A stretch of 63,169 nt of DNA, the filler included, from Reticulomyxa filosa (taxonomy: Eukaryota > Protista > Foraminifera), in assembly GCA_000512085.1 (NCBI GenBank). It is 24 parts of 24 records of this genome, joined end to end, with 100 filler letters (N's around TTAATTAATTAA, not from the genome) between each part and the next. Parts side by side here need not be neighbours in the genome. Positions count along the whole stretch, not along the records: positions 3,098 to 4,275 come from ASPP01050601.1; 23 more parts are not named here. One strand, 5' to 3'. Below the pieces are notes generated by a model. The model was not told the origin of the DNA. It worked only from the letters and a program-made list of their open reading frames with translations, and ran no database searches. A program made the translations under genes and the position numbers. Of this stretch, positions 3,098 through 4,375 are shown piece by piece. Each line of letters starts with the position of its first letter. Position 1 is the stretch's first letter.

Positions 3098-3796
3098 TCC
3101 ATTCACCAACTAAACAAGCACTGGGGAAGGTGATTGTGTTACCTTTCTCTTTTGTAAATACTTATATTTAAGCCTTGGTATTTGTATTTCTCTATTTGAC
3201 ATAATCCATTTTACCTGAGTCAAGTCGGCATTTGCTAGTCTTGCTTTCATTGATCATCTTTTAATTTGATTGGTAGTTTGTTGTCGATCGTTAAAGTCTT
3301 TGCTCTATTAACTCTTGCTGTGGTGATTAATAAGATAAATTAAAGTTGTAATTTGGAAAAAATGCTTAACAGTAAATTTGAAAAGGCAGTGTCAGAAGAT
3401 TGTAACTTGTCAATGATGGTAAGACACTTCGTGATTTCATTGATATGAGAAAAAAAAGGTCAAAGTTCTCATCAATTTGTTTTTTTCATTGTGGCATTTC
3501 TTTAAACCTCCATCGTCTTCACCATTTTTCATCGGTTTTTTTTTTTTTTTAAAGAATCACATGTACTATATCATTTACATTCCAGAACATTGCACTTACA
3601 TACCCTCCCATGATTGAACAAAATAATCGGTGTCAAAGTGATAAAGTCAACGACAAAGAACATCACTATACATTAACTACTTTTCAGAAAACGAATGTCT
3701 TTACATTTTTGAGAAACGACAAACTGGACAACATTTACAAACAACATTAGTGGAAGAAGGTCTCCACATGACCATAATAATTTTTTTTTTTAAAGA

Positions 3797-4101
3797 GATT
3801 TGGTGGGGTCTGGCCGGCCCCTAGGCTCTCATCTGCTACAACCTCCAACATAAACCCTAGAAGTGAGAGAAGGGGTTCCTCCAATAAAATTGGCGGTTAC
3901 TCCTCGGGTCAAGCCCTGCTTCCCTAATTACTAGGGCCTCTGTTGAAGGCCATAGAGAAATGAGAAAGCCTCAGCCCTATTATATGTCTCATAAAGAAAC
4001 ATATCGTCGGGGAGGCTTATAAATAATTCTTAATATGCTACCAGGCCATGTGACATACATTGGTCTGTACTGATGATGTTGCGGGGTCCCAATATTTTTT
4101 T
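3797..4101 (+). ncRNA. Candidate structured ncRNA (~300 nt), possibly telomerase RNA
   Basis: GC-rich island with no credible ORF, many hand-identified helices with G-U pairs favouring the + strand, TAAACCCTA at 3851-3859, T7 at 4095-4101. Confidence 0.45.
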
Positions 4102-4375
4102 GATCAATATTTGTGGTCGAGTTATCCATACCACGCAAAATCTGTGATTTATTGGAATGGTAGTTAAGTCATTCTCAAAATATCCAAAAAGTGCAGCAAT
4201 CAAAAATTTTGTCTTCACTTGCAAAGATTTGAAATTTTTTGTTTACCAACAGAATCGTGAAAATGTTTGTTCTAANNNNNNNNNNNNNNNNNNNNNNNNN
4301 NNNNNNNNNNNNNNNNNNNTTAATTAATTAANNNNNNNNNNNNNNNNNNNNNNNNNNNNNNNNNNNNNNNNNNNN

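Follow-up and report, generated by a model that had tools for sequence, protein, structure and literature searches.

Land-plant telomerase RNAs were first described in 2019 as transcripts of RNA polymerase III (Pol III) genes whose promoters combine an upstream sequence element (USE) with a TATA box and which end in an oligo-T terminator (PMC6765143). The Arabidopsis telomerase RNA (AtTR), which is also the long non-coding RNA AtR8, is 268 nucleotides (nt) long, with its template at approximately nt 43-50, a template/pseudoknot core at nt 19-171 and the P4/5/6 element at nt 178-251. Helix P1a joins both ends of AtTR, with C259 as the final paired base ahead of the U tail, and in Arabidopsis this helix is required for dyskerin binding and RNA accumulation (PMC8450087). 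The type-3 Pol III promoter carries the USE consensus TCCCACATCG 23-24 base pairs (bp) upstream of a TATA box that itself lies near position -30, and a USE-TATA spacing of 23-24 nt is found in Arabidopsis Pol III genes and in Mimulus telomerase RNA genes. The P2/P3 pseudoknot of Viridiplantae telomerase RNAs, 3' of the template, has a U-rich J2/3 loop with invariant U. The land-plant family is credited to Fajkus et al. 2019 and Song et al. 2019. The locus analyzed here lies in a 63,169-nt stretch of DNA (the window, filler included) from the Reticulomyxa filosa assembly GCA_000512085.1. Positions 3098-4275 of the window come from record ASPP01050601.1, and an earlier note had proposed, from the sequence alone, that a compact island within this part, at 3797-4101, may be a telomerase RNA gene.

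Judged by its sequence, the island very probably encodes the telomerase RNA of a land plant and belongs to the AtTR/AtR8 family, as either an orthologue or a paralogue. We are less confident that it is the one working gene than that it belongs to the family. The earlier note had envisaged a plant- or ciliate-style Pol III transcript with the template inside a core-enclosing helix, and this proposal gains support from a series of collinear blocks common to the candidate and AtTR, from the same order of domains, and from ends similar to those known for the RNAs of Arabidopsis, Nicotiana and Scilla. The features that carry the comparison are as follows.

Positions 3802-4101, plus strand: predicted extent of the telomerase RNA transcript, approximately 297-300 nt, with a predicted 5' end and an alternative start at approximately 3820-3825.
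Positions 3805-3814, plus strand: 5' G-rich block GGGGUCUGGC, identical at 8 of 10 positions to GGGGUGUGGG, found 5'-terminally in both the Arabidopsis RNA (AtTR nt 2-11) and the Nicotiana RNA.
Positions 3820-3837, plus strand: blocks CCUAG and UCUGCU upstream of the template, 7 nt apart (8 nt in AtTR), found by pattern search.
Positions 3851-3859, plus strand: predicted template UAAACCCUA, the complement of one TTTAGGG repeat plus 2 nt.
Positions 3925-3951, plus strand: conserved block UAAUUACU-A-GGG ... AGGCC, which in AtTR reads UAAUUACU-G-GGGG UCUU AGGCC around the P2 strand.
Positions 4088-4101, plus strand: 3' tail CCCAAUA followed by T7, a predicted Pol III terminator; AtTR ends in CCCCCAAAUAUUUU.

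The AtTR sequence was read piecewise from primers tabulated in PMC6765143 and PMC11093817, with positions taken from construct names, and most of AtTR was covered in this way. The features of the candidate, their order and their likeness to these AtTR fragments, block by block, were read directly from the DNA. Short blocks are collinear in the two RNAs, beginning with the G-rich 5' end and continuing past the template as far as the 3' tail. For example, in the candidate UCUGCU is followed after 13 nt (10 nt in AtTR) by UAAACCCU and then, in both RNAs, by GAA. The block that holds the P2 strand of AtTR (the G run mutated as "P2" in that RNA) is kept in the candidate, an A-rich purine stretch is common to both, and both end in the pattern CCCAA(A)UAUUUU. 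Each block pattern is unique in the window and was absent from 200 shuffled sequences, except for the G-rich 10-mer, which was found in 63 of 200, and the tail, which was found in 1 of 200. Given the template, the naive joint chance of the blocks is approximately 7e-18, a value that overstates the case because the blocks were picked after both sequences had been seen and that is an order-of-magnitude guide only. On the sequences compared, no reasonable correction would turn the block series into a chance event.

The earlier note had described a 9-mer made of the complement of a TTTAGGG repeat and a 2-nt overlap. This 9-mer is present and unique: TAAACCCTA occurs once, at 3851-3859 on the plus strand, with approximately 0.01 chance matches expected in the whole window, and neither another telomere-type 7- to 9-mer on either strand nor a telomere array was found in the part 3098-4275. 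The 9-mer comprises 7 + 2 nt, where a template of this family is expected to be the complement of one repeat and at least 1-2 further nt. If the RNA starts at 3802-3805, the 9-mer would lie at approximately nt 47-58 (nt 43-50 in AtTR); counted from the G-rich start, it lies approximately 47-55 nt along. The AtTR template, CUAAACCCU, likewise has 9 nt, but the register of UAAACCCUA is one position off. A second telomere-like motif, UUCCCUAAUU, was observed within the small hairpin CCCUA/UAGGG at 3922-3936.

The island differs in composition from the surrounding DNA. The part from ASPP01050601.1 is AT-rich, with a GC content of 0.28-0.35, and contains a single island of 0.45-0.52 at approximately 3798-4094 (values of 0.45-0.52 were measured across 3748-3997), in agreement with the GC-rich island that had been noted before. 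A run of 11 T residues (3781-3791) lies upstream of the island, and the run of seven T residues in which the island had been said to end was located at 4095-4101 and forms its 3' limit. No TTTT occurs anywhere in 3792-4094, while there are 11 other runs of four or more T residues in the part (12 counting the T7), so that the predicted RNA has an oligo-T terminator and no internal run of this kind. The probability of a T4-free segment 3792-4094 by chance is 0.03 at the composition of the flanks and 0.36 at that of the island. The contig had also been called gene-free, and this held as far as it could be tested: the open reading frames (ORFs) in 3098-4275 have at most 64 amino acids; ten of them gave no exact match in a protein collection, a look-up that may have been unfair to the five with TTG or GTG starts, whose translation could differ from the product of a gene caller; and a word search of the protein collection with the longest ORF gave no match. 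A scan for sigma-70 promoters and intrinsic terminators stayed at chance level and is irrelevant to a eukaryotic Pol III gene.

The predicted layout of domains is that of AtTR, with template, template core, 3' stem domain, P1a and U tail in the same order. Both look like Pol III-type genes that end in oligo-T, and both have a 9-nt TTTAGGG template, a 5' end of the form GGGGU(G/C)UGG, CCUAG...UCUGCU before the template, GAA behind it and UAAUUACU-N-GGG...AGGCC downstream. The ends can pair (P1a), and in the candidate a long-range helix is predicted around the template core, with a putative 3' stem domain after it. The helices predicted for the candidate are listed below.

Positions 3804-3811, plus strand: 5' strand of the P1a candidate, UGGGGUCU, which pairs with 4084-4091 (helix enumeration).
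Positions 3805-3810 with 3816-3821, plus strand: predicted GGGGUC/GGCCCC helix of 6 bp.
Positions 3823-3832, plus strand: 5' strand, AGGCUCUCAU, of the predicted core-enclosing helix (P1b/P1c-like; from folds).
Positions 3846-3850, plus strand: CAACA, which pairs with UGUUG at 3941-3945, a candidate template boundary element (free and constrained fold).
Positions 3871-3904, plus strand: predicted hairpin between the template and the conserved block (from folds).
Positions 3960-3971, plus strand: 3' strand, AUGAG-AA-AGCCU, of the predicted core-enclosing helix (from folds).
Positions 3966-4018, plus strand: first 3' hairpin, AAGCCUC/GAGGCUU with inner AUAUGU/ACAUAU, a candidate part of the stem-terminus (P4-P6-like) domain (from folds).
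Positions 4049-4083, plus strand: second 3' hairpin, of 8 + 7 bp (from folds).
Positions 4084-4091, plus strand: 3' strand of the P1a candidate, GGGUCCCA (helix enumeration).

All helices that had been drawn by eye in the earlier note were recovered in place. The core-enclosing helix, AGGCU-CUCAU (3823-3832) with AUGAG-AA-AGCCU (3960-3971), would comprise 5 + 5 bp and a 2-nt bulge. A stack of helices that joins 3827-3850 to 3941-3965 was predicted for this single sequence by the free and the constrained fold as well as by the centroid; its innermost helix, CAACA/UGUUG, adjoins the 5' edge of the template, as expected of a template boundary element, and the AGGCU/AGCCU pairs lie outside the stack. 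The P1a candidate has 8 bp (four G-C, three G-U and one A-U) and lies directly before AUAU7, so that a G-rich 5' strand pairs with the 3' end ahead of the AU-rich tail CCCAAUAUUUU. Further local pairings are CUCUCAU (3826-3832) with GUGAGAG (3863-3869), of 7 bp; the CCCUA/UAGGG hairpin mentioned above; GGCCU/AGGCC at 3935-3951, which overlaps the alternative CUCUGU (3938-3943) with AUAGAG (3952-3957); and CAGGCCA/UGGUCUG at 4042-4067. The hairpins at 3966-4018 and 4049-4083 are placed where the stem-terminus element (P4-P6) is expected, and the former competes with the core-enclosing helix for 3966-3971. As a side observation, CUCUCAU/UCUCAU and GUGAGAG/AUGAGA are each present in two copies (3826-3832, 3863-3869, 3960-3965 and 3987-3992), which allows four mutually exclusive pairings, among them a crossing (pseudoknotted) combination; AtTR likewise carries CUCUCAUG directly 3' of its template.

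The plus strand folds at -99.1 kcal/mol (z = -2.39), and 1 of 100 shuffled sequences folded equally well. The fold is thus better than chance, though not strongly so; the earlier note had counted a fold no better than that of shuffled sequences among the outcomes that would speak against its proposal. The same note had held that G-U pairs favor the plus strand, which did not hold up, since the minus strand of 3797-4101 has the lower energy (-105.1 kcal/mol, z = -4.78). The assignment to the plus strand is made because of the terminator and the template, not because of the energy. Energy by itself would indicate the wrong strand (z of -4.8 for the minus strand and -2.4 for the plus strand).

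If transcription, its exact ends, the helices and the function are as predicted, RNA polymerase III would start at approximately 3802-3805 and stop in the T7 at 4095-4101, which would give an RNA of approximately 300 nt. Its G-rich 5' end would pair with the 3' end just ahead of the U tail to form P1a, and the long-range helix of 3823-3850 with 3941-3971 would close the template core. The single-stranded UAAACCCUA at 3851-3859 would be copied by TERT into TTTAGGG repeats, with 7 nt specifying the repeat and 2 nt serving for realignment, and CAACA/UGUUG directly 5' of it would act as the template boundary. The hairpins in 3966-4083 may represent the stem-terminus element that binds TERT.

Several differences from AtTR accompany these likenesses. 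The candidate is longer (approximately 300 nt versus 268 nt), with 39 additional nt that separate the template from the UAAUUACU block and lie largely in the hairpin 3871-3904, and 5 additional nt in the 5' region. The 3' domain is predicted to form two hairpins, whereas AtTR has one long P4-P6 stem, and no likeness of this domain to the AtTR fragments nt 189-205 and nt 225-245 was seen. Other plant telomerase RNAs show the same kinds of ends as the candidate: the RNAs of Nicotiana sylvestris and Scilla peruviana start with GGGG(G)UGUGGGG or GGGGUGGGUG, and their 3' ends show CAA after a run of C (PMC6765143 Table S1, where the ends are given at primer length only). These shared end types are consistent with a conserved P1a. 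The template context in Nicotiana, with a long AAACCCUAAACC and without an upstream UCUGCU, is unlike both Arabidopsis and the candidate.

Comparison with more distant RNAs was also made. The ciliate telomerase RNA (RF00025) resembles the RNA predicted here in that it is short, is made by Pol III from a promoter of type-3 style and ends in a U tail, and in having a template closed by a long-range helix and a boundary helix 5' of the template. However, the candidate is twice as large, has a plant-type P1a and a 3' stem domain, and does not match the covariance model. The plant 7SL RNA of the signal recognition particle (SRP), RNase MRP and RNase P RNAs, and U3 and U6 are, like the candidate, GC-rich, structured, similar in size and followed by an oligo-T terminator; 7SL RNA has approximately 300 nt. 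A cmscan search of the part 3098-4275, and of the island alone, with 4227 Rfam 15 families at E <= 10 returned chance-level matches only, with the presence of a plant telomerase RNA model in Rfam 15 unconfirmed. These chance matches, two or three per search, were to three C/D small nucleolar RNA models and a flavivirus stem-loop (E 0.4-8.8), far under the gathering scores. The C/D-box matches, at 4011-4066, 3243-3297 (minus strand) and 4158-4248, scored 17.8, 16.1 and 14.8 bits (E 1.4-8.8), where the gathering scores are 45-60. SRP/7SL, RNase P/MRP, and U3, U6 and other small nuclear RNAs are excluded as far as the models reach, with no match at E <= 10, and the same threshold gave no match to the ciliate, vertebrate or fungal (yeast) telomerase RNA models. 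The earlier note had regarded a match to SRP, RNase P or MRP as contrary to its proposal, as it had an attachment to a retroelement; no such match was obtained for the part or the island, and no transfer RNA (tRNA) or short interspersed element (SINE) signature was found. None of the contrary outcomes named there that could be tested was encountered. In addition, papers searched in full text contained neither the candidate's 17- to 22-mers nor AtTR 12- to 17-mers.

The promoter region is the part of the locus that departs most visibly from the plant pattern, and its elements are listed here.

Positions 3540-3555, plus strand: first copy of the 16-nt direct repeat TTTTTTTTTTTAAAGA (repeat search).
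Positions 3760-3771, plus strand: USE-like element GTCTCCACATGA with the core CCACAT, matching TCCCACATCG at 6 of 10 positions or readable as RTC + 1 nt + CCACAT.
Positions 3774-3781, plus strand: TATA-like ATAATAAT, at -31 to -24 of G3805, a putative box proposed by comparison with Mimulus promoters.
Positions 3781-3796, plus strand: T11 run and AAAGA, with an alternative TATA-like TTTAAAGA at 3789-3796; second copy of the 16-nt direct repeat.

The box ATAATAAT at -31 of G3805 may fit the start expected from homology to AtTR, and TTTAAAGA would instead imply a start at approximately 3820-3825 that excludes the G-rich region. Within the USE-like element, CTCCACATGA at 3762-3771 matches the plant consensus at 6 of 10 positions; the position 24 nt upstream of ATAATAAT offers a USE match of only 5 of 10. 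The best USE match of the whole part is ACCTCCATCG at 3506-3515 (7 of 10 positions, including the entire 3' half, CATCG), approximately 290 nt upstream of the gene and just before the first copy of TTTTTTTTTTTAAAGA. The two exact copies of TTTTTTTTTTTAAAGA (3540-3555 and 3781-3796) are 241 nt apart, and the second adjoins the gene. No further similarity was found around them, and a duplicated promoter module is ruled out, as only the 16-mer is common to both sites. The pair may represent the duplicated target site of a 225-bp AT-rich insertion at 3556-3780, or it could equally be a low-complexity coincidence. The insertion, if real, would carry the USE-like and ATAATAAT elements, and removing it does not bring back the canonical USE-TATA spacing. 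As a lead only, GTCTCCACATGAC at 3760-3772 resembles GTCACCACTGAC of primers FW2 and FW3, used for Arabidopsis telomerase RNA constructs (PMC6765143 Table S1).

A number of observations weigh against the assignment to the plant telomerase RNA family. The earlier note had proposed a comparison of the upstream region with U6/SRP promoters, and comparison with plant Pol III promoters did not reveal their USE/TATA arrangement. The consensus TCCCACATCG is absent upstream of the gene within 3 mismatches, and the USE-like element at 3760-3771 is separated from TTTAAAGA by 17 nt and from ATAATAAT by 2 nt, a distance that is 23-24 nt in plant Pol III genes. The 3' strand of P1a, GGGUCCCA, has only three C residues and is much poorer in C than those of published plant RNAs, for example the long C run of AtTR. 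The P2/P3 pseudoknot of AtTR could not be identified: a search for H-type pseudoknots downstream of the template, restricted to perfect stems, yielded only two weak candidates, both lacking a U-rich J2/3, so that a canonical pseudoknot is as little evident as it had been on first reading. Forcing an AtTR-like layout (P1a, enclosing helix and open template) costs approximately 15 kcal/mol relative to the free fold, in which 3966-4018 is closed and the template is paired with CUAGGG at 3931-3936. The template segment CCCUAG (3855-3860) is perfectly pairable with that CUAGGG and is paired in the minimum-energy fold; this pairing could be a template-masking alternative conformer or a mere folding artefact. 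The likeness to AtTR was judged block by block from searches of DNA with short patterns. Lastly, the search for homologues was empty: a metagenome scan with CATCTGCT-gap-TAAACCCTAGAA returned seven loci, all chance matches without likeness beyond the pattern, and there were zero occurrences of an exact 31-mer of the candidate in genome and viral contig collections and of a gapped pattern derived from AtTR in the genome contig collection.

Some of these observations would also be expected if the island were a family member that is a paralogue or decaying copy, with a promoter disrupted, for example by the 225-bp insertion flanked by T11AAAGA, and with the functional RNA made from another locus. 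The missing canonical USE spacing, the exact 16-nt repeat that adjoins the gene (3540-3555 and 3781-3796), the position of the best USE match ACCTCCATCG (7/10) upstream of the first repeat copy, the weak 3' strand of P1a and the pseudoknot that was not found all point in that direction, and telomerase RNA paralogues are documented in Mimulus (PMC12169523). However, the template and the terminator are intact and no T4 run interrupts the gene, the conserved blocks and the GC island stand out sharply, well kept, from the AT-rich flanks, the 16-mer is of low complexity and possibly a chance repeat with nothing else common to the two sites, and deleting the putative insertion leaves the spacing non-canonical. 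We consider a decaying copy unlikely. The same features of the promoter can be read in another way, namely as a plant telomerase RNA gene that still works although its type-3 promoter was remodelled by the 225-bp insertion, which would have separated the gene from its old USE, or as a paralogue at an early stage of divergence. In the remodelled case, transcription would proceed from the degenerate USE-like element and the TATA-like boxes at non-canonical spacing. This more specific account also appears doubtful, about as much so as that of a decaying copy.

Explanations outside the family fare worse. The island might be an unrelated structured non-coding RNA, such as another Pol III or small nuclear RNA-type transcript, with a telomere-like 9-mer by chance; the likeness to AtTR consists of blocks without a model- or alignment-based homology score, the z-score reaches only -2.4, neither a USE nor a pseudoknot could be demonstrated, and telomere-like motifs are frequent in plant promoters (PMC6765143). 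Set against this are the collinear series of AtTR blocks, which includes both ends and the context of the template, the lack of a match to any described RNA family, and the position of the 9-mer, which, judged from the 5' end and from the enclosing helix, is that expected of a template. An unrelated RNA of this kind is improbable. Even less probable, to the point that we give it very little weight, is a fragment of a repeat (a SINE, another retroelement or a GC-rich transposon) without RNA function. The flanking T and A runs and the possible target-site duplication close by would suit such a fragment, but no tRNA-like region was found and no A or B box was seen by eye, no internal or inverted terminal repeats were detected, the putative duplication brackets the upstream AT-rich segment and not the island, and the likeness to AtTR speaks against such a fragment. 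A tRNA-derived SINE was rejected specifically, as ARAGORN finds no tRNA and the only direct repeat brackets that upstream segment.

A telomerase RNA gene of the AtTR/AtR8 family thus accounts best for the island. Work in 2019-2021 had already established plant telomerase RNAs together with their Pol III biogenesis and architecture, and the candidate would add a further member while leaving knowledge of the family unchanged. The sole unusual aspect is the non-canonical promoter with a possible adjacent insertion. Telomerase RNAs evolve fast and escape routine annotation, as in this case, where Rfam 15 gave no match. Because of this fast evolution, each new telomerase RNA has to be recognized by its promoter, template and architecture, and such a gene can be picked out by reading raw sequence. 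If the promoter is indeed remodelled, the locus would be a natural plant telomerase RNA that escapes the strict rule of a USE 24 bp from the TATA box; if it is a paralogue at an early stage of divergence, it would illustrate how telomere motifs of plants are believed to change. The gene predicts a telomere repeat of the TTTAGGG type in its host and would provide a handle for studies of telomerase in that species.

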